Below, piece after piece: positions 8,268-57,044 of a stretch of DNA of 64,000 nucleotides. The notes below the pieces were generated by a model that made no database searches, was not told the origin of the DNA, and saw only the letters and a list, made by a program, of their open reading frames with translations. The DNA is from Neoechinorhynchus agilis (lineage: Eukaryota; Animalia; Acanthocephala), in NCBI GenBank assembly GCA_051530055.1, contig CM121342.1, positions 14,647,480 to 14,711,479 of the forward strand, in the 5' to 3' direction. The position numbers were made by a program, and so were the translations under genes. Every line of letters begins with the position of its first letter. Positions within the stretch are counted from its first letter, which is position 1.

Positions 8268-8309
8268 TTTGAGATATTTCGAACGAAGTAACTTCGCCTC
8301 ATCAGTCAT
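8268..8309 (-). ncRNA. Minimal type I hammerhead ribozyme
   Basis: UGA-CUGAUGA-GGCGAAG UUA CUUCGUUC-GAAAUAUC^UCA on the reverse strand. Confidence 0.75.
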
Positions 8310-8833
8310 CAAAAAATGAGTTTTACACATAAAGGTTTTAAGCTAGAGTGCATGAGACCGCCAAAACCCCAATAATGATTTTGGAAACCCTTAAAAGCCG
8401 ACTTATTCTTGATATCTTTTGATTTTAAGAAATTTCTACCGTCTAAAGTTAATCACGACCTGAAAGATCGAATAACTTCTTAAAAGAAATCAAACCGACG
8501 CAGATAAAAGTTCGACCACGGAAGAACTCATTAAAAATTGTTCATTCCTCATTGAGTGCGTGTGGTGCTCGTCGTTGTTTCTTCTTTTCTTAAATCATTT
8601 CGCCCATGTGTTAATGCAACGAAGATTTACATTAAATAACTTTTTATTATTAATGAGGTTCGCTAATTTCCTCACTGTCTACAGTTAGTTTTGGTAAGGG
8701 CGCAAATCGTATTGATGTTTGTTAAATCTTTTCGAAAATTCCGAATTTAATAATTGCGGAGTAAAAAATAAAGATTTCTAATTGTATACTTTCGGTGAAA
8801 TTAATCCCCCGGCCATAACCTATTTGATTTATT

Positions 8834-8870
8834 TGAGATATTTCGCGAGGTAACCTCGCATCATCAGTCA
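8834..8870 (-). ncRNA. Minimal type I hammerhead ribozyme, intact core
   Basis: UGA-CUGAUGA-U-GCGAGG UUA CCUCGC-GAAAUAUC^UCA; perfect 6-bp helix II; palindromic AUAU helix III. Confidence 0.85.
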
Positions 8871-13595: not shown

Positions 13596-14483
13596 TCACT
13601 GCTCATCGGATGATCCAGATCTCCATTGAAGAGAGTCAAGAATATGAGCGACGCCAGCATCAACAACTCCACTTTTGCAAGTGGTCTTCTTCAATCCACT
13701 GCTATCCCCCAGCCTGTCCACTAACTCCAATTTTTCTTCATTCTGATCTTCTCCATTGGCTAAACAAGATTGGTGACACGTCCTACCTTGGCATTTATCA
13801 ATCATCACGGTCGCGTTCTCTTCGTTTTTATCTTCGCTTAGAATCATACTTTGATAGTGCTGGGTTGATCGCTTTTTCCAGTAATTCCTGAGCATCAATG
13901 GTGCCAACAACGAAACGCAAAGAAGATACAGAAATAAAGAGAAAGTTGGTTTTGCTTGGAGCATCGGTACCTCAACTCCTTTGCCACCATCGTCTTCGAT
14001 GCTGCAATCGGTGCAGTCCATCGCAAGCAACGCTCTTTTGTTTAAGAGATTCACGAGTGATGACTGCGAGGATCTGGTGGCTAGGGCGGTCACGCAAATT
14101 CGATAGGATTTGAATTCGAAATATGAGAGGTGATTTGGACTGGTGAAAATTGAACCGAGTTGAAAGGAAAGCGTTTTTCGAAATTCTTGGAATATTACCT
14201 TAGTAATACCGTGATGAGGATCATCTACGCTGTTCACGTATACTATCGCAGCGATTCGAGAAGTTTTCGTTGGCGCATCGGGGATTATCATTTTGCAAAC
14301 AAAATCCGAAATTCCACTATGGAATTCACAATAAAGGTTAGCAAACTCACTTGAGTTAGTATAGCTTTTTGCTGCTTCATTTTGATGATTTGGCTTTGTT
14401 CGGAAAGCGAAGATGAGGGGGAAAAGAAGAGATGTTATAGCTGATAGCATAGTCACAGAATTTAGAAGACGAAAGCGCTTCAT
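13596..14483 (-). CDS. Orphan type I membrane protein (signal-like N-terminus, possible FN3-like ectodomain, TM, cytoplasmic tail)
   Basis: 295-aa ORF; hydrophobic N-terminus; SYRICVTAL strand-like motif; TM FSLFLYLLCVSLLAPLML followed by RNYWKKR. Confidence 0.6.
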   Translation of the reverse strand: MKRFRLLNSVTMLSAITSLLFPLIFAFRTKPNHQNEAAKSYTNSSEFANLYCEFHSGISDFVCKMIIPDAPTKTSRIAAIVYVNSVDDPHHGITKVIFQEFRKTLSFQLGSIFTSPNHLSYFEFKSYRICVTALATRSSQSSLVNLLNKRALLAMDCTDCSIEDDGGKGVEVPMLQAKPTFSLFLYLLCVSLLAPLMLRNYWKKRSTQHYQSMILSEDKNEENATVMIDKCQGRTCHQSCLANGEDQNEEKLELVDRLGDSSGLKKTTCKSGVVDAGVAHILDSLQWRSGSSDEQ

Positions 14484-15263
14484 GAACTAGTACGCCACTT
14501 AGTTGTACGACATGTCTGATTAGTATTGACGAGGAAAAGAGAAGCGCAATTGATACCCAACCGTGCTTTTCTTCACTTACATCGTTGTGGTCTAATGTGG
14601 AACTCACGATAAGCAGTGGGGAAACAGGAGGCAAATATATCGCCTGGAGACAAATGCTGAAAGTGTGATCGCTGCATAAGTGTAAACGGATATCGAGCGA
14701 AAGATAACCTCGAAAAGGGATTTGCATTCATGAACGTTTAAATTCGCTCAAACAATTTTTCTATTGACTTTCAAGTTAAGTCGTTACAATTTAGTCGAAT
14801 TTGCCATTTTACGTCTTTCTTCTTTAATTAGAGAAAATATTGTGAAGGAGAGCGACTAGAACAATTATGCAATTATGAAAACCGTACTTTTTTAACATGT
14901 ATTTCTTATATTTGGTTCGAATTATCAACAAGCTTATATAGATTATCAGTCTGCCGCAATTGACACGATGGTATTATGGTCAATGGCGTAAATTATCAAT
15001 ATTTATATAGTGAATGAAACTGCAAATCCAATGCTCGGTCTAAATGAATCGATATAGTCACTTTTATTTTTCTTGTTATAAACACTATCTTAAGCGCAGT
15101 ACAGTGCTTCATAGTGTAAAATTTAGATGAGAAGAAATCGCTCACAATGTGTGTTCAATTAGAAATGATTATCTTTTAAGTCTAAATCAAAAGGATATCA
15201 TGTTTACTAACAGTTGACAAATTAATCGTTTTTCCAACTTGCAAGATCAACTTGAGTTCTTTT

Positions 15264-15929
15264 TCATTTAGATTTTCTAAGAAGGCAAACACTTCCCATG
15301 AGAATTGAAGTTAGCACGTATTCTTTTGTCTTAGTCCAGTTCTGCCACAAGGCTCGTTCAAAACCGTCCACAGTCCTGCACAGAACAAATTCAAAATCAT
15401 CATGCTTAACATGCCTAAGCTCCGTATCAATAACTGTACTTTGGACTATATTCTTCATCACATTTACGTTTCCTTCAGTTTTCAATAGGTGCACCATCAT
15501 GCCCAACAGGTTACTTGGGTAAAGAAGCTTCCCTACGTGAGGTCGATAGTTGGCATCAACATAATCAATGATGGCAGGTTCATCGAAAATCTTAATAATA
15601 ACATCCGGCCCGACTTCGTTCACAAGACGATTGATGTCTTCGACCAGTGTCGTTAGAATCACGCGCTCTTCTTCGTTTATAACCCAACTGAAATTCAATC
15701 TAACGAATTGGCGGCAAATATACCTCATCTTTTCCACTTCCATCTCATTGAATCCATGGCCATCATTTATGAGCTTCTTGATTTTATCCATGAGCGGACT
15801 CGTGTACAGTGAACAACGTTTAGTTTCGTCGATACCCTTTGTGTGTTTCAGTTCCATATGAGTCATGCCAGGAAGGAATAACTTTCTTTGTATCCGAGGT
15901 GTTTTTTGCTTTCTAAAAGGAAATGCCAT
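15264..15929 (-). CDS. Orphan 221-aa tail-anchored protein, possibly a divergent Bcl-2 fold
   Basis: Intronless ORF; C-terminal hydrophobic tail plus RKSK; BH3/BH1/BH2-like motifs at Bcl-2-like spacing (by eye only). Confidence 0.5.
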   Translation of the reverse strand: MAFPFRKQKTPRIQRKLFLPGMTHMELKHTKGIDETKRCSLYTSPLMDKIKKLINDGHGFNEMEVEKMRYICRQFVRLNFSWVINEEERVILTTLVEDINRLVNEVGPDVIIKIFDEPAIIDYVDANYRPHVGKLLYPSNLLGMMVHLLKTEGNVNVMKNIVQSTVIDTELRHVKHDDFEFVLCRTVDGFERALWQNWTKTKEYVLTSILMGSVCLLRKSK

Positions 15930-17039
15930 TTCGCTTGAAATTAATACTAAGCAAATTCAAAAGAAAAATGGGAAAACACTGGTGGCTCGTGGTTACAAGA
16001 GAACCCGCTAAAATATCGCATAACTCTCACCATTATATGCCCTGATGCTACACTTGAATTTAAAGAAGAAATGCTGCTGGGAACCACAATGGTAGTTGCT
16101 GGGAGCAGCTATAAATTTCGGTCTAAGCAGTTGAAGAAATGAGGCGTGTAAGGAACACATAAATGACAATGAGTTTGACACTTTTGTGTTCCCACTCGTT
16201 AGAACTCAAGTTATTTTTTGGGACTAAATTTTCTCTCATCAAACATCTATTTTACTCCGTTCGCCAGAAGCATTCCTGTTATTTTTTCTGAAAATTAGGT
16301 GACTTAAAACTTCGTGTAAACGATAATCAACTTATAATTTATTCCATCTATATAGTCAAACGTAGAAACCCCGTTTTGCTAAGATCAGTGACTTCATTTA
16401 CTCGTCGTCTATAATTTGATAGTAAGTGACAAGCTTCAGGAATAGTGGAGAGCGATCCTTTTACGGTAATTCGCTGCCCCTTTTCAGCCAATAAGGACGT
16501 AAACTGATGTTTTACCTAAGCGATGAGCGATGAAATAATATTGCGTTCGAGCAAAACAAAAATTCAGAACTACTATTTTCTTCTGACAATAACGCGTACT
16601 CTAATCCAGCGACGACTGTTCGTCGTTAAGTAACACTTACAATGAGTTTATGTCTACAGGATATTATACCAAACAAAATTTCCTGGCATTTTACAAGTTT
16701 TCAAGATGACTCGAACAATAATTAGTGAAAAAATATTGCATTATCGACAAAAATGTACAAATTCTTAAATACACTATAATGTCGGAAAATACCATATGGA
16801 GTGCTCTTCTTGCTTATTGGAAGGACAAAAGCTTTCAAATAGAATTTGCGCTTGAGTGGATGTAAACTCGTTTCGCAAAAATAGATTTTCAATTAGTTGA
16901 TAGAATTATATTTACATTTCAGCAGGATACAAATCAGGAACTATTTATGTTTGCTTTTCTAAAAATATTAAACCTCAAACTAAGAAAAGTCACGAACTAT
17001 TCAGTTCATTAAGCTGTCTAAGCAGCTCTTCAAATTTGC

Positions 17040-17400
17040 TTTGATAAATAGTTCATTGCCTAAAACGTGTTTTATACCCCTTCACTTACCGCCAGGACCG
17101 CATCCTACGATTCGTAAAAATTCTCCGGTTCAAGAGCACACTGCTCTAAAAACTCTGTTATTTCTTGAATACGGTCTACATACGGGGCGCAATGATTTAT
17201 TAGTATTAGTTGTAGAGAGCAATCGAGTTGCTAAAAACTGCGAGTTACCGGGTTATGTGATTGAAATTATTGTTTAGAAATCTACACCCTTTAAATGATT
17301 AAACAGACTGATGATGAACCCGATGAGGTTCGAAACGTCTTTAATAAATAATCATTTACCCCGGGTGAAGACTTCTAAACAATAATTCCAAAAACAATAT
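17040..17400 (+). mobile_element. PLE 3'-end relic with a hammerhead inside a long hairpin
   Basis: NSPVQEH resembles a GIY-YIG C-terminus; 17263-17289 is inverted with 17363-17389. Confidence 0.6.
17292..17358 (+). ncRNA. Type I hammerhead ribozyme, intact core
   Basis: CUGAUGA (17308-17314) U GAACC CGAUGA GGUUC GAAACGUC^ (cleavage after 17339); ACGU palindromic helix III; AAAUGAUUA/UAAUCAUUU extends helix I. Confidence 0.85.
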
Positions 17401-18189
17401 AGTTATCCAAATTTCTATTTCGTTCCTAAAATCACGAAATGAAGTAAACCGGTTATAATTGTTGCCAGTTCCTGAATCTGACTAAGGAAAACGTAAAACA
17501 GTGTTTTATCAATAAATCATATTCTTGGTTGTGTTTCAAAAGTGGATAATAATTGATGAGGATGAAATTAATGTGTGCTTAAAATGACACGAAATTGCGA
17601 CTCGGCATCATGGTCGATCTCGCGTTAAATCGTGATGAACTTTATACATCACGGTGGAGTTTCTCACATTACAACTGAACTCAAGCATCGACTAAGGAAT
17701 CCGCAAACACTCCAAGAGAAAACGACAGCGAAATTTCTCGTTCGCATCGCCCGTTAGCGTGCAGATAGCATGTAAGCCATAAAACCCTTACTGTTTCGAC
17801 GGGTTCACAACACAGTGTACAAATGAACATGATCCGCCGAAAAGAAAATTTCCGATTTTTATCGCTTAGACTTGGCGTTTGTTCTACACCGTTAGTTTTA
17901 CTGAATAAATCGCTAGCCTCTTCTAGACAACAGACGAAGCGTCAAATCGTCCGTCAAGACGTTTTTAAATGGTGAATGACTGAACTTTATTCATTATTCA
18001 GAATAAAACCACCGAGAGAAACAAGTTGGTTAACTAATGATTGCAAAACTTAAATGTGTCTAATTTTTTGTACTGTCTTCATCGGAAAACTTTAATTGTA
18101 TTGTACGACGGTTAATATGAAGCAGCAATCGGAGGGCTATCGTTTATACTTTTTAGGTTAACCATTACCTTAACTACTAATTTTTAATC

Positions 18190-20880
18190 CCATTATTAAT
18201 GAACAAACAAGAGGAATATGTACCTTTGGTCTTAGTGAACACTCGAGTCTGATAGAATAAATTAATATGGCTGTTGTTTTTGGAGTGAATTACGGGTCAG
18301 ATCGGGAATTAAGCGTTCGGTCGAATAGGAAAGTTAGTGGTTATTGTTTTTTAGGATTGGTCTTTCCTCAGGTCCATTTCGAGTTATGACATAGGAGAAG
18401 ATTGGGCAGCGAAGAAAAAGCAGAGGTAATGGCGAGTGCTGTGCTCATGTGAAAAGGGAAATAAAATGTGGTAAAATTGTGGTGGTAGAATTGAGAGTTG
18501 TTTGTTAACATTTTTACAAAGGCATTCGGGGAGCGGGGAAAATTCAACTGTGCAAATTTATGAGGTTCTTCTATGAAACGTTTCAAGGCGGCGGATTTGA
18601 GATTTGGATAGGTTGCAAAAAACGGGATAGCTGTAGGTGAGAGAGGGTAAAATTAAGCTAAGGTAAAATTTGAAAGGATCAGGCGAAAGGACTCCTAAAA
18701 GGCGGAGGCGTTTGAGGAGGTAAAATTTCAAGCTATTACGCTTGATTGAAATTTTAATGTGCGAGTCACATTTCGGATTTGAGTGAAATTAAAAATACAG
18801 AATTATGTGGTAGGTGACTCGTCGGATGTCATTTGGAAGATCTGGGTAGGATATGGGGTTGCGCAAGATTGAGGAGATCATCTGGAAGCATTTAGAGAAG
18901 TTCAGGTAGAGTCTGTGATTGGTGCAGAAATCTTTGATGTGGATGATTTCGTTAGATGTTAAGGAGAGGGAGAGGTGGGAGTGTGATTTTGTGATGAGGG
19001 TGAGATCATCGAAATATAGGAAAAGTACAGAGCTGGACGAGGAAGGTTTCAGTTCGTTTAAGGAAATATTAAAAAGAAGTGGTTACAGGACTTCACCTTG
19101 AGATACTCCTTCAGTGAGGGATACCCAGCAGTGAATGTATTGTTGGCGATTGTGAAGATATGATTCGAGCCAGCGGATCTGCCACAAGTTGGGACCGAAA
19201 TCGGAGCAGGCCCCGAGAGGGAGTAAATGGTCCACGGAGCCGAATGCTTTCGGCAAATCCGGTTGAAAAAATGGATGACGTGAGAGGGATTATTGTCGAG
19301 GTTTCGTAACAGCGTGTCATAGATGCAAAGTAGGGCATCCGTTGCAGAAAATTTAGGCCGGAAGCCGAATTGCAAAGGCGACAATTTGTTGTTGAGAAGT
19401 GGAAGAAGGTGACATTAAAAACATTTTTCGATGATTTCTGAAAGAGCGGGTTAGAAAGATATTTGACCGAAATATTTGTCAGAATTTTTTTGGGAAGAAG
19501 AATTACTTTAACAGTTTTCATGGATGCGGGGTGGATGTCGTATAAAAAGCTGGGATTTATAATGAGGGAAATAAGGTCTAGGTGTTCGGGGATGAATTTA
19601 ATTTTTCGAGGTGTTTTAGGAATTCATATGACGAAACTAAAGGGAGTATTTTTAGAGTTGGCAGAAGTGTTGGTTGTAGAAGTGAAATATTGTGTAGTGT
19701 CTGATGTGGAGCAATGATTGTAATTTGAGCCAGGGCAGAAGTTCTGATTGGTGGAGTCTAGAACACATTTCAGTTCAGAAGAGGACAAATTTGGGAAGGG
19801 GTCAGAGTTTCCTATGCCACGAGAGAGTCGTTGACGGCCGCCACCATGCTCAATTGCATCCTTAACGAATTTTGGCGGAAAGAGTTTTTTCTGGCGATAA
19901 GTACTTTGTAAGTTAGTGGCTTTTGTAAAAGGGGAAAGTCTGGAGAGTTATTTCGAAGAAGGAATTTTAAGATTAGGGGTTGTCCATGATAGGCTCCGGT
20001 TTGATAATCTAATGAACTTCTTGGGAATTGTCGAAGTTAGAGAATTTTTTATGATTGAGGTTAGGGATGGCATGGTCAAGGAAGGGTCATTTGTGTTGTC
20101 AGAGTTGAATGTTACATGTTGTCACATAGACTTCATTACTCCACGTGCAAAATGGTCTATCCCAAGACGTCCGGCCAGAATTGTGGACTCACAAGAGACC
20201 GGTTTAACAGGTTCCTAAGAATGACGGCAAAACGTTTGTGATTGAGATCAGTAAACTAGACTTCGAACAATACCCGATGTGTACGGCCGATTCGAAAGCC
20301 CTCTTCCCCAATGCCCCACCGTCTAAAGCGATTGAATAATCTGGTCAGAGTTCGCGGGGGAGGGGGTTTAAAGGCGGATGAGTAGGCGTCGATATTTGTG
20401 AACACTTTGTCGAGGTGAGCGTCAAGACGAGTTGGGAAGTCAATAAGTTGACGATACTCGGAGAAGGGTAGGAGAGGAAATAGTTTATTGAAATCCCATG
20501 TAATTAAGAAATGGTGTGAATTTTTGGAGTTTATGAGCTCCATCATAAAGTCAACTTGGCGAAAGGAGGACCTAGGACGAGAGGCAGGAGGGCGATAGAC
20601 GCTAGCAATGGTGAATTCCCCAATGTTATTTCTTAGAGGAGCTGAGAAATGGACTGCGATGAATTCTAGATCGGGGTTTTGTAGAGAGTCTGTGAGAGAT
20701 AAAAAGTATGGTACCGCTTGCCGTACGTAAATTGAGACCCCCTCCTGGGCGGTCATAGCAGTATGCATGGAAGGAATGCTATCCGGAAAGGATGGCTGAA
20801 TTGTTGTTGAAAAAGGTAAGCCACGTTTTTGCTAAGATGACCGCCGGTTTTTGAGGTAGATGAAATGAGTGAAATTTCAA
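18190..20880 (-). mobile_element. LINE copy B (APE plus RT), degenerate
   Basis: APE motifs GVSIYVR, TIASVYRPP, DFN, LDKVF; RT QFGFRP, LYFDD; stops and frameshifts. Confidence 0.9.
19038..20705. repeat. Left arm of a second, about 1.67-kb near-identical inverted repeat (partner 26737-28403)
   Basis: Coordinates sum to about 47442; mirrored ORFs 19916/27224 and 20256/26719. Confidence 0.95.
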
Positions 20881-21048
20881 CCAGTTAAAGAATGAGGCAA
20901 CGATTTTTGGTTTGGTGCATTGGGGTGGAAATTAGGGAGATTGATCTTGCTTTGGCTGACATGGATGATAAATTTAGGGACGAAGTGATACAAGTTTTAG
21001 ATCTCAAAGTACTGATAAACAAAACTGTTCATTCAATAATTCAAAAGT

Positions 21049-21525
21049 TTAATCCGATTGTTTTATTAGGTCAATTATGTAATCTTCACATTTCTTAAAC
21101 TGCTTATCGTTAATTGAATTTAAGGCGTTCCAAAGAAATTCGTGATTTATTCGTGAACCATCCAGAACAGCAACATCCTCACTAGGTAAATTCATTTTAG
21201 CAACTTTTGTAAGCAATCGTTCAGAAATAAACACTTTCGCTTGTTCAAGTTTCCCACTTTTCTTTAAAACATTAAATAAGGATTGGTCGCTTCTTTCAAG
21301 AGTTCGCCTTATCTCCATAAATTTTTTGTAGAGATCATCGTCAAAGCTTGTTTCATCAGGCTTCCTAATGGAATCCCAATTCAATTCTTTTCGAACATTT
21401 GCGATGTTGAAAAGCTCACTCCTGAAAGACGGTCGTCTAATAGGAGATGCCTCTTCATTTGGCGACAGTTCGATATCCTCAGTCGAATAAACGTCAGTTT
21501 CATCTAATTCCTCACTGGCTGGCAT
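21049..21525 (-). CDS. Unknown 158-aa protein with an acidic N-terminus
   Basis: ATG-initiated ORF with helical, protein-like composition; weak resemblance to the MPP10 N-terminus is unverified. Confidence 0.4.
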   Translation of the reverse strand: MPASEELDETDVYSTEDIELSPNEEASPIRRPSFRSELFNIANVRKELNWDSIRKPDETSFDDDLYKKFMEIRRTLERSDQSLFNVLKKSGKLEQAKVFISERLLTKVAKMNLPSEDVAVLDGSRINHEFLWNALNSINDKQFKKCEDYIIDLIKQSD

Positions 21526-22228
21526 TTCGCGATTTTCTATGACCCAAATCGAAATAAAATCGTTGTCGTAGAAACAAACACGGACGTATTCAAATCGACT
21601 TAAGAATAATATAAATTCAGAATAATATTAAGCTTAAAATGTAAATTTTACATTGTGTTATATTAAGTAGACGTGCATTAAAGAATTCAGTTAATATCGA
21701 ATGCTCCGAACCTTGCGGTATTACTAAAACATTGCAAAACGATTTTCTATCCATTAAACTTGATTTGAATCTCTCAACCCGTACGAAGTTGAAGAAAATG
21801 AAAAACAATTAATTCCCCATAAACAATTACATGTCGCTTAACAATAAATTTTGTAGCATCTCTCTGAATGATGAATTGTCTGAAATCCTTAACCACTAGC
21901 AAAATGCCATACTAAACCCGTTGAGCGATAAGTTGACTTTATACAATTATATCAGCAAATCGGTGCCATTTATATGAAGTATTGGCTAAAAACTAAAAAA
22001 ACCAAATATTCGAGCAATTTTGTCTCGAAAACCGAAACAATAACTTGGGTTGAATTGCTTCCAAAACCGCACGAAAAAAATGTCAGCTAAATACGTATCA
22101 TGTAGTAAACCATTGCGACTCTCATGAGGGGGTTGAATCTCAAAGAAATCAAATCCTTAATTGTCCTCAAGCCAATACGGTTCACGGCCGAGATCGAAGT
22201 ATAAATTTAAGATAGGCATCAGTGTATA

Positions 22229-25200
22229 TGTGATATTGAGCGTCACAATCGACCGATCTATAGTGGCGGTTTCAAGCGTGCGCACGTTCGTTTTGTTATT
22301 TCGTTTCGTTGGCTCAATAAAACATAGTTCAGGTCTAGTTCAGGCATATATTATAACAATTTATTGAGCCAACCTCCTATTCGAATTCCATGGAGAACGA
22401 AAAATCTCTATCGGACGATTCAACCAGTTCATGCCAAAGAATGAACCCCAACTTTAAAATCGAACGGTTCAATACGTTACCGCATGAAAACGGTTCGGCG
22501 AAAAGATTCAAATTGTGGAAAAGGAACCTCAAGTATCTCATACAATCGGTCAACAACAAGGATGACAAACTCGAGTACCTATTTGCCAATATTGGACCGG
22601 ATGTGTTTGAGCTTGTTGAGGAAGCCCAAAGTTTCGACGATGCGTTCTCCACCTTGGAAAAGCTCTATGTCAAAAAACCAAATGTTGTATTGACTCGACA
22701 TTTGCTCGTCACTCGCAAACAGCTGGATTCGGAGGGCATCGACCAATACGTCCTGAGCTTAAGGAACATCGCTCGTGATTGGGGCTTCAAGACATCTAGT
22801 GGAGAAGACATCAAAGATGAATCCATCCGAGATGCATTTATTTCTGGGATCAAATCGAGTAACATAAGGGGAAGATTGTTGGAAATCGAGGATTTGACCC
22901 TATCAAAGGCTATCACGATCTCGAAAAGTATCCAATGTGCGGTAGATCGTTTGGAACAATTTGATGACAGTAAAACCAGCCAATGCTTACGCAGTCTAAC
23001 CGTCGCTGATTCTACGTTTGCTGATTCTATAACTGAAAATCTGAATTGCAACGCTGCTATGGGTAGCGGTAAGAGCGAGGGATTTTCCGGTCTATCAATA
23101 TGCTTTTTCTGTGGGAATAAGCGACATCCCAGAAACCTATGTCCTGCTAACGAAGCCAGGTGTTATAACTGCCAAAATAGTGGGCATTTCGCTAAGATGT
23201 GCAGATCCAAAAACCCAATAAGGCCGAACTATCGTCCGTTTTTCTTGCTTGAACTACGTATGATGGCCCTTCGAAACCGACCTCGCTGGTAATCCCAGTA
23301 ACGATTCAAAACAAGACGTTTCAAACCTTACTCGATACCGGTAGCTCTCTCAATTTCATCGACAACAGCACCTCGAAAAAACTTAATCTTGTTTTAGAGC
23401 CTGCATGTATGAATGTTTCTATGGCATCCGGACGTGCAACAAAGCGGGCGCTAGGAAAGACCTATACCAAAGTACAGTATAAGGAGGAGAATACTGAAAA
23501 CTTAGAATTCTATATATTGCCTGACTTATGCTGTGACATTATCCTGGGCTTGCCCTTTATCAAACTACACAAGGAATTACGAGTAAAACTGAATGGAGAG
23601 GGAAACATTCTCGAATTGACAGCCGCCGTTACCGATCATACATCAAGCGAGACCATATTCAGTCCGACCCTTTTCGAAAATTTGAGCGCTGATTGCCATC
23701 GCCACGAAATCTAGATCGTATTTTGGAACGGATTTTCAATTTATCAAATCGGAGATAGGACGTATGCTTAAAGGTGATATTATAGAAACTTCAAACTCGC
23801 CATGGCGTGCTTAAGTTGTCCTCGTTAAAAAAGAAAACGCCAAAAAACGACTTGTTGTCGACTTTTCTCAAACGATAAATAGGTTTAGATACCTGGATGC
23901 CTACCCGTTACCGAAAATTGAAACCATAGTTAATGATATCGCAAAGAATACAGTGTTTAGTCAAATTGACTTGAAGGATGCATAATATCAAGTTCCGATA
24001 GACGCCAAAGAGAGAAATTATACGTCCTTCGAAGCTTGCGGAAGATTATACCGATTCAAGAAAATTCCCATGGGAGTCACGAATGGCGTGGCCGTGTTCC
24101 AACGCTTCATGAATCACATCATCGAAGAAAATAAACTCGCAAATACTTATTCGTATTTGAGCGATGTAGTCATATGTGGGAAGACCCAACAAGAACATGA
24201 TCAAAATCTTGAACGTTTCAAGGAAGCGGCGATCAAGAGAGGGTTGAGACTAAACGGCTCGAAAAGCCGATATGGACTCAAAAGAGTTTTTGTGCTAGGA
24301 TACGAAATCGGGGATGGACGATTAAGACCTGACCCTAACAGACTTAAGCCTCTCAACGACATAGCGACTTCCACCGACAAGTTCGAGTACTACAGTCGGT
24401 GGATTCCGAATTATTCGAAGAGAATTCAGCTCCTGGTATCGAATCACATAAAATTTCCCTTGTCCAATGAAATAACGATCTTGATTCAGTCCCTAAAAGC
24501 CGATATCAAAAATGCGGTGATTAATAGTATCGACGAAGGAAAAGAATTTGTCCTTGAAACAGATGCTTCGGACCTTCTTTTCGAAGACATTGAAAAAACA
24601 CGAAAAGCGATACCATATCGTCGAAAAGGAAGCGTATGCTTTAGTTGAAGCTGTGAAACACTGGAGATATTTTTTGGCCATTCGACCATTCACTGTAGTC
24701 ACTGATCAAAAATCAATCGCATTCATGATGAACCAACAACATTCAAAAAAATTAGAAACGAGCCAATCCTTCGTTGGAGGTTAGAACTATCCCCCTATAA
24801 ATATACATTGAAATATCGCGCCGGACCAGAAAATCTAGCAGCCGACGTTCTGTCACGCGATAGTTGCGCAGCAATATATGACGGAGAAAATTGTTCGAGA
24901 CTACGACGACTCCCCGAAATCCATAGAAAACTTGGTCATCCCGGTGTTACAAGAATGCAGCATTATACGAGGCAGAATAACATTGCCTTCTCTTTACAGG
25001 AAATCCGTGAAGTTATCGCCGCTTGCCCTGTGTGCTGTCGTGTTAAGCCGAGGTTTTTCAAGTCACAAGGTCTACACCTCCTCAGGGCAACAAGACCTTT
25101 TGAACGTCTATCAATAGACTTCAAAGGACCGCTTCCTCGTACGAACAATGAGTACCAATATCTACTAGTCGCCATCGATGAATATTCTAGATTCCCGTTC

Positions 25201-26065
25201 GCGTTCGCATGCCATAATTGCTCCGCCAATACTGTTAGGATATGCCTCTCTCAATTATTCGCGATCTTCGGATATCCCGATTATGTTCATTCTGATCGAG
25301 GTTCCTCTTTTACGTGCCTACGCGAATGGCTCAACGATTTGTCTAAGCCATACTACTTCATATCATCCTCAAGGAAATGGACAATGTGAAAGGCTCAACG
25401 GAACTATTTGGAAAACAATTGAGCTAATACTAAATGATAGGAACCTGTCCATAAGCAAATGGTCCGATGTACTTCATGAGGCACTCGCAAAAATATGCAT
25501 GCAACTTTGTACGAGTACTGGTCAGACCCCTCATGAGCGAATGTTCGACTTCCCGCGACGATGCGAGATATTCTCACCCATACCGGGCTGGATCTCGTCC
25601 TATGAGAAAGCCTACTTTCGAAACACGAACCTCAAATCGAAATTTGACGACCAGGTGAACGAAGTGGGACTGATCAGCGCCAATGAAAAGGATGCACTGA
25701 TTGAATTCCCCGATGGTCATCGCCAATTGGTTTCCACACAAAGATTGGCTCCCACTGGAGGCGATTTATCGGAGAACGAAATGAGCAAAGAATACCCTCA
25801 ATTCTTAGGAGACGCAAAAGAAAATGATACCGCTGAAATGGAAACAATGGGGACGGAGTATGTCATGGAGAATGGACAAGAAGTCAGGAGGTCCTGCCGC
25901 GTTCGGAAGAAACAATATTGAAGGGGGGGGGTGATTGTGATATTGAGCGTCACAATCGACCGATGGATGGTGGCGGTTTCAAGCGTGCGCACGTTCGTTT
26001 TGTTATTTCGTTTCGTTAGCTCAATATAACCTAGTTCAGGTCTAGTTCAGGCATATATTATAACA
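22229..26065 (+). mobile_element. Ty3/gypsy LTR retrotransposon, structurally complete but decayed
   Basis: 130-bp LTRs 22229-22358 and 25936-26065 (TGT...ACA, 6 mismatches); PPT about 25920-25931; gag, protease LLDTGS, RT with YLSD, RNase H with a deletion, integrase HHCC and DDE; many stops. Confidence 0.95.
22390..23292 (+). CDS. Gypsy Gag with two Cys/His knuckles
   Basis: RHLLVTRKQ..IRDAFISG; CFFCGNKRHPRNLC and CYNCQNSGHFAKMC. Confidence 0.85.
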   Translation: MENEKSLSDDSTSSCQRMNPNFKIERFNTLPHENGSAKRFKLWKRNLKYLIQSVNNKDDKLEYLFANIGPDVFELVEEAQSFDDAFSTLEKLYVKKPNVVLTRHLLVTRKQLDSEGIDQYVLSLRNIARDWGFKTSSGEDIKDESIRDAFISGIKSSNIRGRLLEIEDLTLSKAITISKSIQCAVDRLEQFDDSKTSQCLRSLTVADSTFADSITENLNCNAAMGSGKSEGFSGLSICFFCGNKRHPRNLCPANEARCYNCQNSGHFAKMCRSKNPIRPNYRPFFLLELRMMALRNRPRW

Positions 26066-26239
26066 CCTCCCTTGTGTGAAAGTGAACGATAGAGTCAAGC
26101 CGAAATAGTCATGATTAAGAATAAGACAATCGCAAAAATCGAGGCAAAATAACGACAACCGTTTTAAGCTTCTAAGAACTACAAAAAATCAACATTGATT
26201 AATTTTATCAAAGTTTCGGTTAAATGGGTCCGTCACGCC

Positions 26240-26736
26240 GTTGCTGTCTTCAAAGCTCGCGACAAACGGTTTCATCATATTTTAAGGAGTTCCAAACGTT
26301 GCAGTTGTTTTACTGACGCTTTGGACCAACATTCTCGTTAACTTTGTTGTTAGAACGGCGCAACACACAGTTGTCTTTTCTATAAAATTTGCGACCTACG
26401 CTTTCGCTAACTTCGTTGTATAAAACGCACTTCGCGCTGTTGTTGTGTTTCTCATGCGCGAAGCGTACGACCTCAACCCCTCCGTTATTTAAAGTAAGCT
26501 TAAAGATGTTGCTGTCTCTAAAGCTCGCGACATACGGTTTCGCTAACGTCATATTTTAAGGAATTCGAAACGTTGTAGTTGTTCTACTGATGCACGGGAC
26601 CAACATTCTCGTTAACTTTGTTGTTACAGGGGCGCAACACACAGTTGTCTTTTCTATTAAATTTGCGACCTACGCTTTCCCAAACTTCGTTGTATAAAAC
26701 GCACGTCGCGCTGTTGTTGTGTTTCTCATGCGCGAA
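26240..26736. repeat. Two tandem copies of about 225 bp (period about 268 bp)
   Basis: 26240-26462 versus 26508-26736, high-80s percent identity by eye. Confidence 0.9.
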
Positions 26737-29385
26737 TTTTTATTTCTCACAGACTCTCTACAAAACCCCGATCTAGAATTCATCGCAGTCCATTTCTCAG
26801 CTCCTCTAAGAAATAACATTGGGGAATTCACCATTGCTAGCGTCTATCGCCCTCCTGCCTCTCGTCCTAGGTCCTCCTTTCGCCAAGTTGACTTTATGAT
26901 GGAGCTCATAAACTCCAAAAATTCACACCATTTCTTAATTACAGGGGATTTCAATAAACTATTTCCTCTCCTACCCTTCTCCGAGTATCGTCAACTTATT
27001 GACTTCCCAACTCGTCTTGACGCTCACCTCGACAAAGTGTTCACAAATATCGACGCCTACTCATCCGCCTTTAAACCCCCTCCCCCGCGAACTCTGACCA
27101 GATTATTCAATCGCTTTAGACGGTGGGACATTGGGGAAGAGGGCTTTCGAATCGGCCGTACACATCGGGTATTGTTCGAAGTCTAGTTTACTGATCTCAA
27201 TCACAAACGTTTTGCCGTCATTCTTAGGAACCTGTTAAACCGGTCTCTTGTGAGTCCACAATTCTGGCCGGACGTCTTGGGATAGACCATTTTGCACGTG
27301 GAGTAATGAAGTCTATGTGACAACATGTAACATTCAACTCTGACAACACAAATGACCCTTCCTTGACCATGCCATCCCTAACCTCAATCATAAAAAATTC
27401 TCTAACTTCGACAATTCCCAAGAAGTTCATTAGATTATCAAACCGGAGCCTATCATGGACAACCCCTAATCTTAAAATTCCTTCTTCGAAATAACTCTCC
27501 AGACTTTCCCCTTTTACAAAAGCCACTAACTTACAAAATACTTATCGCCAGAAAAAACTCTTTCCGCCAAAATTCGTTAAGGTGGCAATTGAGCATGGTG
27601 GCGGCCGTCAACGACTCTCTCGTTGCATAGGAAACTCTGACCCCTTCCCAAATTTGTCCTCTTCTGAACTGAAATGTGTTCTAGACTCCACCAATCAGAA
27701 CTTCTGCCCTGGCTCAAATTACAATCATTACTCCACATCGGACACTACACAATATTTCACTTCTACAACCAACACTTCTGCCAACTCTAAAAATACTCCC
27801 TTTAGTTTCGTCATATGAATTCCTAAAACACCTCGAAAAATTAAATTCATCACCGAACACCTAGACCTTATTTCCCTCATTATAAATCCCAGCTTTTTAT
27901 ATGACATCCACCCCGCATCCATGAAAACTGTTAAAGTAATTCTTCTTCCCAAAAAAATTCTGACAAATATTTCGGTCAAATATCTTTCTAACCCGCTCTT
28001 TCAGAAATCATCGAAAAATGTTTTTAATGTCACCTTCTTCCACTTCTCAACAACAAATTGTCGCCTTTGCAATTCGGCTTCCGGCCTAAATTTTCTGCAA
28101 CGGATGCCCTACTTTGCATCTATGACACGCTGTTACGAAACCTCGACAATAATCCCTCTCACGTCATCCATTTTTCAACCGGATTTGCCGAAAGCATTCG
28201 GCTCCGTGGACCATTTACTCCCTCTCGGGGCCTGCTCCGATTTCGGTCCCAACTTGTGGCAGATCCGCTGGCTCGAATCATATCTTCACAATCGCCAACA
28301 ATACATTCACTGCTAAGTATCCCTCACTGAAGGAGTATCTCAAGGTGAAGTCCTGTCACCACTTCTTTTTAATATTTTCTTAAACGAACTGAAACCTTCC
28401 TCGCAACACTGTAAACTTTTCCTATATTTCGATGATCTTACCCTCATCACAAAATCACACCTTCACCGCTCCCTCTCCTTTCGACCGTCATCCACTCCGG
28501 ATCCGTCATCCACTCTGGATCCATCATCCACACTGGATCTGTCATCCGCATAATCCACTCCAATTTCCGGATCCGTCATCAACTCTAAAGTGATCACGAA
28601 GACCCAGAGGTGCATGGTTCCTCTTCCTAATTTCTGCATCAATCACAAACTCCATCTCACTTTCTCTAAATGCTTCGAAATGATCCCCTCTCTCCCGCAA
28701 CCCCACATCATCCCCTGAGTTTCTAAATGACATTCGACGAGTCACCTCCCTCCGAATTTTCGGTCTCTAATTTCAATCAAACCTAAAATGGGACACGCAC
28801 ATTACACTTTCCAATCGAACGCAATATCTTTAAAATTTATCTCCTCAGATGTCTCCTTTCCAAATTTTACTTCAGCTTAATTTTGCCCTCCCTCCTATAC
28901 GGTTATCCCGTCTTTCCCAACCTATCCAAATCTCAAATCCATCGTCTTGAAAAGTTTCATAAAAGAACCTCTAAAATTTGCACAGTTGAATTTTCTCCGC
29001 TTCCCGAATGTGTCTGTAAAATTTTCAAACGACGATCAAAATGCCACAACCATACCACCACAATTTTTGCCACATTTTATTTCAATCTTCAAATGAGCGC
29101 AACACCCGCCATCTCAATTCTTTTCATCCTCCAATGCCTCTACCTCCGCTCCTTTTTCCATACTACACAATCTTCTCGGATATCATAATTTGAAATGAAC
29201 CTGGGACAAGACCCAACCTCATAAACTCTCCTAAAAAACAATAACCACCAACTTTTCCATTCGACCGAAAGCGTAATCCACTCAAAAGTTAATAGCCACA
29301 TTAATTTAACCTATCGGAACTCGAGTGTTCGCGAGTTCTAATATTCTCGAAGACCAAGATGTACATTGTTCCTCTTATTTATTCA
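26737..29385 (+). mobile_element. LINE copy C, a hybrid of copy B (5' part) and copy A (3' part)
   Basis: 26737-28403 mirrors B; 28030-29385 mirrors A. Confidence 0.9.
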
Positions 29386-32356
29386 ACAATGAGACGTGCT
29401 ATTGTTAAAAAATTTCTTTAGATTGTAACTTTCTTGTGTTCTATCACAAACTAGGAACCAAATAAGCTTTAAAATAATTTTTACCAAAGAACGATTTTGT
29501 CTTAGTTCCTAGTTCTTTGTATTTTTATTATGTAGTTGACCTTTTTCTTGCAGAGTTTGATGAACTAGGATATAAACCGGTGTACTTTCACTCACATTTA
29601 CAACACAATCACATAGAAGTGGCCCATTAAACCTAACCTACGGTTTTGTTCGATCTATCCGGAGGATGCGGTGGTCTTAAATGACATTATATTGTTTTGT
29701 GTAACACTATTTTTTAACACAATTCACCATAAAAGTTGAAAAAAATTTAAATTAAGAAGAAAAAATCGATTCGCAACAATTTGTAATCTCATAAAACTTG
29801 GTTTAAATCTTTAAGCCTCGCTTGATTGAACCGTGCTACTTTCGTAACTTTCCACAGCGACTGTGTTTCCGGCACCTTCAACGGATTCCGTAGATCCACC
29901 ATATTCGAATCCTCCTGTCATTGTTGTGGCGCTTCCTTCGGCTTCGACAGCACTTGCGAATCCGCTTCCACTGCTCAGAAATTCTGCTCCTGAGTATCCT
30001 TCAAAACCACTTGTTCCATATGACGTATATTGAGTCGCGGTTGATGAAAGATCAGCAGCACCGCCAGAAACTAGTCCACCGAATCCTGCAAGTCCATAAT
30101 CGGCTGTTTGGTATGCACTGTACGAAGCATCTCCTCCCGCAAGGGCAAGGGACGACTCAGCGCCGCCGAAACCACCTGTAAGTTGTAAGTCTTCACTAGC
30201 CAGATATCCGGATCCTGCACTAAAAGCTCCAGATCCTGCACTAACAGCTCCTGCTCCACCGACGGCATAAACAAGTCCGGGAGGAGTAATGTTCTCAACA
30301 ACACCTGCATTCCGCGCTGCCGACACAATTGAGGCGCTATCGAGAAGGCTAGCACCGTATTGTGAAGCGTAGGACAATGGGTTAACGCTCATAACTCCTA
30401 GGCGTCTAAAAACCCTCTGTACTGCTGGTCGTGGTGCTGTGTACTGCACAATCAAGTTCTTTGGAGTTCGGTATGCGCGGGCAGCCGCAGCTCGTTGGTA
30501 TATGACCTTTCGTCTTGGCAATGGGCCGTACTGTAGCCATCTTTCAATGATCACATCACGTGGCTTGGCTGGAAGAGCTGGATAACGCTCAATGATCACC
30601 TGTCTCGGTGGTGCGGGAATTGCTGCAAGTCTCTTGATAACAGTCTGAGTTTTGGTAACTACTGGCATTCTGGGTGGGCGCTCTCTTAGAACAAGGGCTG
30701 GAGGAGTGCGTGGACGTGGTGGTCTCTGTCTAATCACTAGAGGTGGAGCTGGTTTTGGTTGTGGTGGACGAACTTCCTTTATAATGAGTGGGCCTGGTGC
30801 CGGTGGGGCCGGTGGTCTGAGAAATCGTATAATAACGTTCTGTCTGTGGACGGTCGATGCACCAGTCAATGCGCGCCTGACGACGGTCGGGCTCTGGTCA
30901 GCCTGGATACGGTAGGCGTTGAGAGGTAAGACTGCTCCTGCTCCTGCTCCTGCTCCGGCTCCTGCACTAAGTCCTGCACCGCTTGAACTGAACTCGGCTG
31001 AAGAAGCGGAGAATCCACCTTGTTCAACTAATCCACCTGTCGCTCCTTCAAGAGCACCGAACGCTCCACCTGCGCCAAATGATGCTGACGAGCCATAAGC
31101 AGCGGCTTCACTGAAAGCGGCAGCATCTTCGGCACCATATGCTAGCCCGAGACCTCCTTCGACTCCGGCTCCATATCCACCGCCGGTGCTTGATTCAAAA
31201 GAATAGGATCCAAATGAACCGCCTTGGCCACCTGTAAGTCCGAGATCCGCAACTCCACCTTGTCCGTATGTCTCATAGGACACTGCTGCGAATTGATTTT
31301 CGACTGGGGCGGTATAAGCACTGGATGATTCAAAACTTGTAAGTCCTCCGGATGAAAAACCTCCCAGGTTTTGGGTAGTAACTAGGTTGCCACCACTTAG
31401 TTGAAGTCCGCTTAAAAAGGGCTGATGCGGGTTTAGATCCAAGTCGCTGCCTGTTATTTCAGTCATTGTTATTTCACACAAAGAGTTTGTTCAGTGGAGG
31501 TTGAGGACCGAAATTTGAGTGTGTGAAGTTAAAGAAGCCTTACAGTCTCGTATTTATGCTAGTCTGTGCCCCATACATTGCAGCGATTAGTAGTTTGACT
31601 TTAGTCATAACTACACAAATGCAGGAGACGTTGCTTACTCATGCTCACCTGTGAATCTCAGATACTCTCGTGGATCTCGTTACAGCGTGGCCGTTAACCA
31701 ATTGTCTCGCATATGAGCTAAACTCATCGGTGTCAGGGAGCTTGGGATGTGCACGGGTTACTCATTCACGGCATTCTGCCCAAGTTAAACATTTCGATGA
31801 GTCTAAAGAAGCCACATGCTCTTGCTATCAAAAGCGCTCAGCAATGAATCACCCGCCGCCAGCTTTTTCAACATTTTTTATTTCGATGCGGCAATAAATG
31901 TGCTAAGAATAGCCTTTTTATTTTTTTAAGCGGAAGTCTTACTGTCGGATTCCAATTAAATATTCTACGGCCTTCTAGATTATTGTTGTATGTAAAAAAA
32001 CCACATTGAAAATCACCGGTAGTACGAAAACGAGTGTTACCGGACAAATGCAGCAAATGTGTTTTCTTCTGGTCGACAGGGCTCATTTCTCAATTTAAGG
32101 AAGACTTAAATCATTCACATGAGCGATAATCTGCACGTAAACCATTTGATTTTGGACTTCGCGCCATCCCCATATCTTTCATTCGATAAGACGCATCCTC
32201 TAATTTCAATAGGAGGAAACCTATATCACTCACTTCCGTCAAAAATAGATCCTAGAAACAACGACCAGTGAATTCATAAATGCTTCAAACGAAATTCTTG
32301 CCTTCAGCGACATTAAGTAGCTGATGTCTCATATCGGGTCCTAACGATCCTAAAAG
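28030..32356. repeat. Right arm of the 4.3-kb inverted repeat
   Basis: Reverse complement of 1066-5393. Confidence 0.97.
29811..31466 (-). CDS. Gly/Ser-Pro/Arg structural-type protein, copy 2
   Basis: Identical to copy 1 in translation except P to Q (ADPSPT vs ADQSPT). Confidence 0.85.
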   Translation of the reverse strand: MTEITGSDLDLNPHQPFLSGLQLSGGNLVTTQNLGGFSSGGLTSFESSSAYTAPVENQFAAVSYETYGQGGVADLGLTGGQGGSFGSYSFESSTGGGYGAGVEGGLGLAYGAEDAAAFSEAAAYGSSASFGAGGAFGALEGATGGLVEQGGFSASSAEFSSSGAGLSAGAGAGAGAGAVLPLNAYRIQADQSPTVVRRALTGASTVHRQNVIIRFLRPPAPPAPGPLIIKEVRPPQPKPAPPLVIRQRPPRPRTPPALVLRERPPRMPVVTKTQTVIKRLAAIPAPPRQVIIERYPALPAKPRDVIIERWLQYGPLPRRKVIYQRAAAARAYRTPKNLIVQYTAPRPAVQRVFRRLGVMSVNPLSYASQYGASLLDSASIVSAARNAGVVENITPPGLVYAVGGAGAVSAGSGAFSAGSGYLASEDLQLTGGFGGAESSLALAGGDASYSAYQTADYGLAGFGGLVSGGAADLSSTATQYTSYGTSGFEGYSGAEFLSSGSGFASAVEAEGSATTMTGGFEYGGSTESVEGAGNTVAVESYESSTVQSSEA

Positions 32357-32985
32357 GTCCTTCCCATGGATCAACACACACCTTGGATTCCTTTAAGAGA
32401 TCTGCAGCTGTGCCACTGTTTCTAAGATCCTATAGAATATGCTCAACAAAAAGTTAAGAACGTTTGAAATACATCTCATTACTCACGTTGTGAGAGCAAG
32501 GGGTAATCCCGAATCGACGATAAGAAGAGCTTTCCACAAAGCCAGGAACATCGCAAATAGACACGAGAAAATAATCATTACATGTTCGTCGAATGAAAAA
32601 CCTAAATATATAAAAATGTCGATATGTGATGTACCGGGATATGTGATTGGAATTATTGTTTACAAATCTACACCCGGTAAAGAATTATTTATTAAAGACG
32701 TTTCAAACCTCGTAGGGTTCATCGAAACGCCTTTAATAAATAATTATTTACCGGGTGAAGACTTTAAACAATAGTTCTAAATATATAGGAATTAAATGTG
32801 TGAATAACAAACTTCAACACATACTTAATGAAGATTTGCGTAACCTGTACAATACGATCATTTGGTATACTATAAAAGAGTGGCAACCCTGCAGGTATCT
32901 ATAAAAATAAGCCAAAATATAAGAAGCATGAAGTGGTATATGAGGTCCACTGCAAGTACTGCCCGGCCAAGTACGTGGAACAGAA
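32357..32985 (+). mobile_element. PLE relic (RT C-terminal region and GIY-YIG) interrupted by a hammerhead-derived palindrome
   Basis: LFLRSYRICS, RARGNPESTIRRAFHKA, EVVYEVHCKYCPAKYVEQ; palindrome at 32649-32777. Confidence 0.75.
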
Positions 32986-33541
32986 AACCTTGATCAAGAT
33001 ATCGAAATTATCCGACCGATGTGAAATATCGGGGAAATAAATTAGTAAAGATTTGAATCCGTCGGGGTGGCGAAACTAAGAGAAGAAAGTATCTATTCCC
33101 GCGAAGTTATTAATTGGAGATATAATTTATTCGTGGAACTTTAACGGCGTATTCCGAAAGAGAGATCGAAAAAACTTGCGAAACAAAGGCAAACCTTGGC
33201 GTAAAATATCGAAATTATCCGACCGGTGTGAAATATCGGGGAAATAAATTAGTAAAGATTTGAATCCGTCGGGGTGGCGAAACTAAGAGAAGAAAGTATC
33301 TATTCCCGCGAAGTTATTAATTGGAGATATAATTTATTCGTGGAACTTTAACGGCGTATTCCGAAAGAGAGATCGAAAAAACTTGCGAAACAAAGGCAAA
33401 CCTTGGCGTAAAATATCGAAATTATCCGACCGGTGTGAAATATCGGGGAAATAAATTAGTAAAGATTTGAATCCGTCGGGGTGGCGAAACTAAGAGAAAA
33501 AAGTATCTTTTCCCGCGAAGATATTAATTGAAGATATAATT
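32985..33541. repeat. 207-bp tandem repeat, about 2.7 copies
   Basis: ATCGAAATTATCCGACC recurs at 33001, 33208 and 33415; units almost identical; related to 9128-9222. Confidence 0.95.
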
Positions 33542-33808
33542 CGCTATCAGGCTAGCAGCATTGCCTCGTCATCGCCCATCCTCCCCGAAGATAATAATCG
33601 AAAGCATGTCTGTTTATCTTTTACTGCATTATTTACTCAACAACGCTGATCGTTTGCAGTTTTATTGAAATATTGATCAAAAAGTTGTTAAGAGCCGAAA
33701 GCTTAAATAAACAAAACTTGCATTCTTCCAGAATACTTCAAAAAATCTCATTTTGACTTATTGGTGTTTGGATATACGGGGCTCTATTTTCTAAAAAAAT
33801 CACTCCAA

Positions 33809-35024
33809 ATGGCTCTTAGCGGTCAACGGGAGCGTCGATCCACATCGAGTGAAGGTTACCAGCCCGAAGGATTCAACTGTGCGGACTATTTCCTTCAGCA
33901 GACATCTACTTCCGGTTTAAGCGAAGACAAACACATTCAGCCTTCGTTTGCAGCCGCTCAGACGTTGATAGAATGCGTAAAGCAGAGTCACCCAGGCACG
34001 ATGTTCGAATTACTGGACATTCTCGGTCGTGGTCAGCGTCAGATTGAAGCTGTGGCTGATCCTTGTTCCCTTCCTGCGGTTCGTGCGGGATGTAGAGCAT
34101 TTAGAGCATATGCAGGTTATGTTAGGACAGCTCAACTTGAGTATAAGTCCTTTAAATGCCCTCCGGTCGATATGGAGGGCGTTGTAATCGATCGTTGGCA
34201 TGTCGACAGGCTGTTCATGAAAGTGGACGCAAGTTCGTAGAAGCTGCTGAGAACAGTAAAAACGATATCGCCAGATTCGCAATACAAAATGCTTTAATCG
34301 CATGTGCGGGAGTGTCGTCTGATCGACCGATTCTTGTCCATTCTCATTCATCAGTCGTTCATCATGTTCTTAAAATTGTGGCTCAGAAGAGAGCGCAAAT
34401 GAACCAAAAAACCCATGTTCTCGTTACGAAAAGTGACGCTGATCTTGGCGGTTTCTGGATGTACCGTAAACTAGCGGACGTTAAATCAATCGACGGCGAA
34501 AAAGATCTTATCCATGTCGAAATTATTAACGATTCCAGTGTAGGATGTGTAAAGTGGACGGGAAAGATGATTTCCTTTTTTTAAACGGGTCTTCAGTGAC
34601 ATTTCGTGTGTTTTTGGATCTCGATTACGGTTCATCTTTCTTGGCCTTAATGGAAACTGTTTCGCTCGTTTTACTCGGTGCTGAAGCTGTTACTCAAGAT
34701 GGCGGAATAGTGAATAGATCCGGTACTCTTTCAATATGCATTTGCGCCAAGCACTTCAAAGTACCCGTTGTTGTTTTGGCCGAAATGTTCAAATGGTCCG
34801 ATTATTGTCCTCGCAATAACCATTCAATGGCAGCAGAGTTCAAGTATGGAAGTGCATTAACAAGCGATCACATTAAATGCAACCAATGCAATGGGTGTAC
34901 TGCAGCTCCTTCTCAGGTCATCGATTACACCGAAGGAAAACTAATATCTCTTCATATATGTGAGGACGGGCCCATGGATCCAAACGCTGTTTCTTTAGAA
35001 ATCATAAACACCTTTGTGAGATAA
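33809..35024 (+). CDS. EIF2B1: Translation initiation factor eIF2B subunit alpha, three exons inferred
   Basis: AAAQTLIE, ILVHSHSSVV, LVLLGAEAVTQDGGIVNRSGT, VIDYT match eIF2B-alpha; start codon and junctions inferred. Confidence 0.9.
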
Positions 35025-39000: not shown

Positions 39001-39073
39001 AATGACTAAGACTACCTCAAAGCGTACCGCCTTAGTTTCAGATCCTTCCTACCGCTGTTTTTCTCACCCTGAA

Positions 39074-54740: not shown

Positions 54741-54744
54741 CATT

Positions 54745-57040: not shown

Positions 57041-57044
57041 TGCA

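Follow-up and report, generated by a model that had tools for sequence, protein, structure and literature searches.

A chimeric inverted duplication in the genome of Neoechinorhynchus agilis, probably shaped by homologous exchange between two dead LINE fragments

We analyzed 64,000 nt of contig CM121342.1 (assembly GCA_051530055.1) from the eoacanthocephalan Neoechinorhynchus agilis (Acanthocephala); this stretch, in which position 1 corresponds to base 14,647,480 of the contig, is called the window below. It contains two fragments of long interspersed nuclear elements (LINEs), designated A and B, and a 5.6-kb block, designated C, the reverse complement of which equals positions 1066-5393 joined to 19412-20705. 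The explanation that we favor, with a probability of about 0.58, is an inverted segmental duplication of 1066-20705, the copy of which lost 14 kb, including the gene LIS1, by homologous exchange between direct LINE tracts.

Results

Block C joins two donors in inverted orientation

The arms of the duplication were mapped with a repeat finder and by self-BLAST of the window, and both approaches agreed. The point at which C changes from one donor to the other was mapped using a three-way alignment of A, B, and C together with a site-by-site map of the informative columns. The elements concerned are listed below.

1066-5417, plus strand: arm A, comprising a unique flank (1066 to ~4030) with a gene for a 551-aa protein, followed by LINE fragment A
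~4016-5417, sense on the minus strand: LINE fragment A, 5'-truncated at ~5417
4942-5417, minus strand: shared tract T in LINE A, within the reverse transcriptase (RT) domain; its core, 5108-5393, is identical to B
~18190-21050, minus strand: LINE B, a longer dead non-long terminal repeat (LTR) retrotransposon, recognized by its frames, stops, and RVT_1 match
~18190-18960, minus strand: diverged 3' part of LINE B (B_L), within the interval missing from C
18237-18931, minus strand: 3' part of LINE B that is 70% like A 4092-4792
18961-19436, minus strand: tract T in LINE B, with the core at 19127-19412; the N-terminal part of the RT follows
20259-20831, minus strand: endonuclease-like part of LINE B
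26737-32356, plus strand: block C, a chimeric inverted copy (self-BLAST, three-way alignment, site map)
26737-28029: B-type 5' part of the LINE in block C
28030-28314: core in block C
28315 to ~29382: A-type tract and 3' part of the LINE in block C
29383-32356: copy of the unique flank in block C, holding a second 551-aa gene

In the self-BLAST comparison, the reverse complement of 28006-32356 matched 1066-5417 with 99.6% identity over 4352 columns, while that of 26737-28480 matched 18961-20705 with 98.5% identity over 1747 columns, and the two matches overlapped inside block C at 28006-28480. An earlier interpretation made from the letters of this DNA (hereafter, the sequence-only reading) had claimed that the block at 26737-32356 was stitched in inverted orientation from two donors about 14 kb apart through a hybrid LINE, and self-BLAST, the three-way alignment, and the site map all agree with this claim. 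The skip that it placed at 5394-19037 is real, but these limits were loose, the exact interval being 5394-19411 or, equivalently, 5020-19037. The likeness between A and C stops sharply at 1066/32356, and that between B and C stops at 20705/26737, while LINE B itself runs further. Low-stringency searches revealed no homology past either arm boundary, and neither a target-site duplication nor microhomology was found at the two C junctions (26736/7 and 32356/7). Both ends of the block are abrupt, one of them being LINE sequence beside a satellite.

LINE fragments A and B share a tract with a perfect core

The conceptual translation of B matched Pfam RVT_1 (E = 3e-18), and the RT motifs FGFRP, QGxVLSPLLFN, and FDD are present in all three copies, on the minus strand in A and B and on the plus strand in C. 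The best relatives of the B translation in protein databases are at most 30% identical to it and carry PF00078 together with the AP-endonuclease domains PF03372/PF14529; the endonuclease-like part itself gave no Pfam match. LINE B is dead, as it contains at least four premature stops and several frameshifts. The 3' ends of the LINEs have short T runs only, no LTRs were found, and the LINE reading frames carry no gene annotation in this assembly.

A and B are arranged as direct repeats at a distance of 14,019 nt, and their tracts (4942-5417 vs 18961-19436) are 96.4% identical over 476 nt. By segment, the identity is 66.5% (4040-4792) and, after an indel, 91% (4942-5107), then 100% (5108-5393), and finally 83% (5394-5417) over the last 24 nt of A, where 20 of the 24 positions match B; past 5417, no homology between A and B was detected by either blastn or tblastx. 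As the LINE of A genuinely stops near 5417, we take A and B for old insertions that were separate and have been combined in C. As the sequence-only reading had stated, they are clearly diverged apart from the shared tract, being 66-91% alike or unrelated outside its perfect core. Its further claim of a tract of about 373 bp that is about 99% identical in all three copies holds for 5020-5393, where A and B are 99.2% identical (371/374) and C adds one substitution and a 1-nt deletion, but the full tract is larger, at 476 nt.

Inside this tract, a 286-nt core is 100% identical in A and B (5108-5393 = 19127-19412). Its counterpart in C (28030-28314) has a run of six A residues at 28175/28176 where A (at 5247) and B (at 19266) have seven, which is a 1-nt deletion at a site where no copy, A, B, or C, is in frame. 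To the left of the core there are 433 informative columns, and C is of A-type in all of them apart from one three-way site and five isolated sites; at these five, C equals B, and we read them as substitutions private to A. To the right of the core, C is of B-type at 40 of 40 columns. There is one switch only, from A-type to B-type, and it is located within 5108-5393. Since it falls inside the 286-nt perfect match, it lies where homologous exchange is expected. The junction is thus in a stretch of high identity, the transition is single with no mosaic, and the donors are direct repeats that flank the lost segment.

The chance of a perfect 286-nt run arising in flanks that are 91% identical is ~0.91^286, or ~2e-12. 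The window contains exactly three occurrences of a 36-mer taken from the core, and shuffled sequence contains none. The N. agilis sequence examined for other LINE copies amounted to ~100 kb in total and included, besides the window, 8 kb upstream of it and, from another chromosome, a 20-kb locus in which the core 36-mer does not occur. In the window, no further copy of the family is closer than 84% over 125 nt, and the upstream 8 kb yielded none. LINE debris elsewhere in the window (54-58 kb) shows ~40% protein identity beside the tract and no nucleotide match to the tract itself. In a different species, Pomphorhynchus laevis, the locus compared contained no match to the core, and a database of 5.8 billion proteins held no close protein relative, the best being 30% identical. 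Because the perfect island sits between segments of 91% and 83% identity, after which homology ends, it does not look like family-wide conservation, and we read it as the probable trace of an earlier gene conversion between A and B.

Block C is a DNA-level copy of LINE B

The stop codons of B recur in C at identical positions, so that each has open segments of 30, 57, and 107 aa, and the two copies have in common at least four premature stops and a frameshift. C is a DNA-level copy of B and not a fresh retrotransposition, because the latter would have needed a dead master. A different history may still be imagined, in which the LINE of C is an independent 5'-truncated insertion of a young C-type subfamily, and only A and C are related by segmental duplication. 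The B-C likeness does end exactly at the LINE end of C, in the endonuclease-like part, as 5' truncation would have it, and the arms differ more in their LINE parts than in the unique flank, which would suit separate histories. Yet every stop and frameshift is common to B and C, so that a dead master mobilized in trans would be needed. Moreover, A keeps 24 nt of diverged LINE sequence (5394-5417) past its match with C, and is not simply a cut copy of C. The A-C and B-C divergences in the LINE are equal, no other copy was seen in the ~100 kb of the N. agilis genome that was examined, and no poly(A), microsatellite tail, or target-site duplication was found around C. We rejected an independent insertion as the principal explanation on account of the stops common to B and C and the diverged 24-nt tail of A, and we give this history hardly any credence.

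Two other derivations were tried and rejected. If A were a retrocopy of C with its downstream flank (3' transduction), a tail and a target-site duplication would be expected; neither is present, and A has LINE sequence that is absent from C. Nor can the two copies of the B-type part be explained by recombination between inverted LINEs, since the resulting inversion would leave that part single.

The arms are unevenly diverged

A and C differ at 13 positions over 1066-5393, only two of which lie left of 4040, while B and C differ at 11 positions over 19412-20705. These 24 differences, 23 of which are substitutions, include five changes private to A and five private to C, and their pattern argues that the arms are probably real paralogues rather than one sequence written twice. 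Within the LINE, the two sides of the switch are equally diverged (11 in 1354 nt vs 11 in 1294 nt), as one would expect had both halves of C been copied in a single event. In the unique flank (1066-4040 vs 29382-32356), there are 2 differences in 2975 nt vs 22 in 2648 nt of LINE (Fisher p = 5e-6), i.e., 0.07% in the flank and 0.85% in the LINE parts. The divergence changes near the 3' end of the LINE, and 1066-3903 contains a single difference in 2838 nt. An excess driven by CpG sites in the LINE parts was rejected, since only ~3 of the 23 substitutions are in a CpG. Three sources of the uneven profile are conceivable: the outer 2.8 kb may have undergone recent arm-to-arm conversion, the LINE parts may have exchanged sequence with LINE copies located elsewhere, or the repeats may carry consensus noise. 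Conversion between the arms, which the sequence-only reading had invoked, is thus compatible with the profile but is not its only reading.

A flank divergence of 0.07% would also suit alleles, and we considered whether C might be an assembly artefact, namely a mis-joined path or a haplotype with a 14-kb deletion, wrongly oriented by Hi-C scaffolding and sealed by gap closing. Hi-C scaffolding puts leftover haplotigs beside the allelic locus in either orientation, and one of the two abrupt ends of C, in the LINE beside the satellite, is at a typical place for a contig to end. The 46.2-Mb assembly was built from Oxford Nanopore R9.4 reads of a pool of ~50 worms, Illumina reads, and a little high-fidelity (HiFi) data, using MaSuRCA in hybrid mode with Flye, purge_dups, instaGRAAL Hi-C scaffolding, manual curation, and TGS-GapCloser (PMC12690905), and the pooling, the hybrid assembly, the Hi-C placement, and the gap closing all speak for this possibility. 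On the other hand, the long reads, filtered to at least 5 kb and covering the 46-Mb genome ~90x, should span a repeat of 286-476 nt, and BUSCO duplication is only 1.8% (PMC12690905). There are no runs of N within the 64-kb window. A haplotig would be expected to match its allele along its entire length, and two gap closures would have to be false, while an allele deleting LIS1 and neighboring genes is unlikely to have been frequent enough to be assembled. The 0.85% divergence of the LINE parts is mismatched with that of the flank if both are allelic, and the predominance of substitutions among the arm differences (23/24) also counts against an artefact. Taken together, we regard an artefact as unlikely, though it deserves to be kept in mind.

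Proposed course of events

In the explanation that we favor, the starting point would have been a pair of old, dead LINE fragments that were similarly oriented and separated by 14 kb, and an earlier gene conversion between A and B would have left the 476-nt tract of high identity with its perfect 286-nt core. An inverted copy of 1066-20705 would then have been placed 6 kb to the right, beside the satellite, and homologous exchange in the identical core would have dropped from the copy the 14 kb between the tracts. The exchange might have taken one of two routes: (i) in the course of break-induced or replicative repair, the copying strand left B and continued on A, or (ii) the full 19.6 kb was copied inverted and the interval was then deleted between the two direct repeats. 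What resulted would be a hybrid LINE, B-type in its 5' part and A-type in its 3' part, together with another intact copy of the 551-aa gene, whereas LIS1 would not have been duplicated. How the events followed one another, which way the copying ran, and that A and B had earlier undergone conversion are all inferred. The sequence-only reading had proposed an inverted duplication with a template switch from B to A, which fits all the data seen but is indistinguishable from the two-step version, a possibility that it had not listed; a template switch and a later deletion leave an identical product.

Several observations weigh against this explanation: (i) the flank is ~12 times less diverged than the LINE parts, which calls for an extra event or for consensus noise in repeats; (ii) the perfect A-B core requires a separate, earlier conversion event; (iii) the blunt junctions of C, devoid of microhomology, suit capture of a fragment by end joining better than microhomology-primed replicative switching; (iv) no target-site duplications were found that prove A and B to be independent insertions; and (v) a single hybrid assembly, made from pooled worms, is the only basis for the structure.

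The same anatomy is formally compatible with the circle model of the sequence-only reading, a history in which an ancestral C-type LINE was first duplicated in inverted orientation, after which a 14-kb circle carrying LIS1 and a 5'-truncated, diverged LINE integrated by one crossover and left A and B as hybrids. The extra 14 kb is bounded precisely by the 476-nt direct repeats, C resembles an empty site, and the perfect core could be the crossover's own conversion tract. The search for target-site duplications also returned a candidate 12-mer with one mismatch that pairs the 3' flank of A (4000) with the 5' side of B (21129), as would suit this history, but such a match is at chance level and the rival pairing of 18183 with 21048, also a 12-mer with one mismatch, is equally good. 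Under such a history, a segment of several genes, one of them normally essential, would have to be excised, circularized, and re-integrated in the germline, and the LINEs, only 66-91% alike elsewhere, would already have had to share a nearly identical tract. Signs of a donor site or of a circle-closure junction were not seen, and more events are involved than in an inverted duplication with exchange. We consider this history very improbable.

Gene content, spacer, and neighboring genes

The genes of the arms and of the interval absent from C, the sequence between the arms, and the genes to their right are as follows.

1956-3611, plus strand: single-exon 551-aa gene of arm A, intact
29811-31466, minus strand: second copy of the 551-aa gene in block C, intact, with P191Q
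5418-18960, plus strand: interval absent from block C, with LIS1 and at least one further annotated gene
~10226-12042, plus strand: LIS1 (LisH_PAC1 and WD40 Pfam matches, LIS1 homologues, a 445-aa gene call)
from ~13596, minus strand: further annotated gene in the interval (gene call)
20706-26736: spacer between the inner arm ends, 6031 nt
20706 to ~21050: 5' end of LINE B, in the spacer
21049-21754, minus strand: annotated 176-aa gene, in the spacer
22229-26065, plus strand: gypsy-type LTR element, in the spacer, with Pfam zf-CCHC (gag zinc knuckle), RVT_1, and rve (integrase)
26240-26736: 274-nt satellite, 1.8 units, in the spacer, abutting the inner end of block C
33809-35024: eIF2B-family gene
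38927-40870: calnexin/calreticulin gene (Pfam E = 1e-70)
58888-61218: JIP3-like gene (WD40_2)

Self-BLAST revealed no second copy of 5418-18960 elsewhere in the window. The 551-aa protein is rich in Gly, Ser, and Ala, has a proline-rich core, and contains no Pfam domain. Its homologues, 50-63% identical and some of them carrying EF-hands, were found only in rotifers and acanthocephalans; the protein itself is present in one public record only, CM121342.1, and a paralogue lies on another chromosome of the same assembly. In P. laevis, the homologue of the 551-aa gene has different neighbors and no LIS1 within 10 kb. Relatives of the LIS1 N-terminal part were at most 46% identical and located on short contigs, and they offered no usable synteny among the collections searched. 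The naming of the calnexin gene in the sequence-only reading is borne out by the Pfam match at 38927-40870, while its JIP3 assignment is made plausible by WD40_2 at 58888-61218.

The gypsy element in the spacer has 130-nt LTRs that are 95.4% identical, and its frames are broken in several places. With LTRs diverged by 4.6% vs at most 0.85% for the arms, the element is older than the duplication, and so the spacer was present before the duplication took place. A fold-back palindrome has a short or absent spacer; here the spacer measures 6031 nt and, because it holds an LTR element older than the arms, the structure is not a simple fold-back.

The 274-nt satellite that abuts block C recurs at a distance of 3.8-8 kb upstream of the window (1-4261 of the 8-kb upstream locus), where at least 15.6 units are arrayed in the opposite orientation, with 90-94% identity. 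No consistent model of a larger duplication linking the abutting satellite with this upstream array came out.

Other repeats in the window

Just past the outer end of C, a 207-nt tandem repeat (32996-33616) consists of three units that are 100%, 99%, and 69% identical, and adjoins sequence that reads like a GIY-YIG motif. A self-complementary repeat of ~135-150 nt, resembling a miniature inverted-repeat transposable element, occurs in three places (32632-32781, 17246-17392, and 61978-62120). Two 486-nt direct repeats, 41496-41981 and 46512-46997, are 98.8% identical and lie 5 kb apart around an RT-bearing element, which may be of the LTR or Penelope-like type. Nested retroelement debris at 54000-58015 includes a distant LINE on the minus strand and an LTR-type RT/RNase H open frame (55304-56605, plus strand), as well as a 125-nt piece (57579-57702) that is 84% identical, in inverted orientation, to LINE B 19723-19846. 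Finally, an older, rearranged direct duplication of 95-98% identity links 1-844 with 48779-52430 and includes the end of an ATP-binding cassette (ABC) transporter gene. It reaches the upstream locus (5915-8045 of that locus, L001, vs window 50064-52193), and its piece 237-844 lies on the opposite side of its partner relative to the 48-52-kb copy.

Discussion

The mechanism behind block C is of a known kind, i.e., repeat-mediated homologous exchange within a segmental duplication, and it is not a new one. Non-allelic homologous recombination between dispersed repeats accounts for Alu- and L1-mediated deletions and for the formation of solo LTRs. As in such cases, direct repeats flank the lost segment, and one hybrid repeat shows a single switch of paralogue sites in the longest perfect stretch. 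Unlike in these cases, the deletion is found only in the inverted duplicate and not at the original locus, and the repeats are 286-nt islands of identity in LINEs that are 66-91% similar.

Fork stalling and template switching or microhomology-mediated break-induced replication (FoSTeS/MMBIR) gives rise to the duplication-triplication/inverted-duplication (DUP-TRP/INV-DUP) structures at human MECP2 and PLP1. Block C resembles the products of this type of template switching, in that an inverted segment is derived from non-contiguous donors, the switch occurs between homologous repeats, and one event would yield a complex product; it differs from them in having outer junctions that lack microhomology, a 6-kb spacer, and no triplication. 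Large palindromes with arm-to-arm gene conversion, such as those of the primate Y chromosome, offer a third comparison. Here, too, inverted arms surround a unique spacer, 1066-3903 is near-identical between them, as ongoing conversion would leave it, and a gene is kept in two intact copies, whereas the arms are small (5.6 kb), one of them is internally deleted, and conversion would be deduced from a single uneven divergence profile.

For users of the assembly, the 31-kb region is one to check against reads before claims on gene copy number or synteny are made. If the integration of a circle were true after all, the window would hold a sequence-documented relocation of several genes via a circular intermediate in an animal germline, with C preserving the empty site. 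With the inverted duplication and exchange that we favor, the locus is a well-resolved case, the switch being narrowed to 286 nt, of dead LINE fragments shaping the compact 46-Mb genome of a parasite. The 551-aa gene is now present in two intact copies, while LIS1 is still single. A short island of identity, probably derived from gene conversion, would thus have sufficed to direct the exchange that decided which genes were duplicated.

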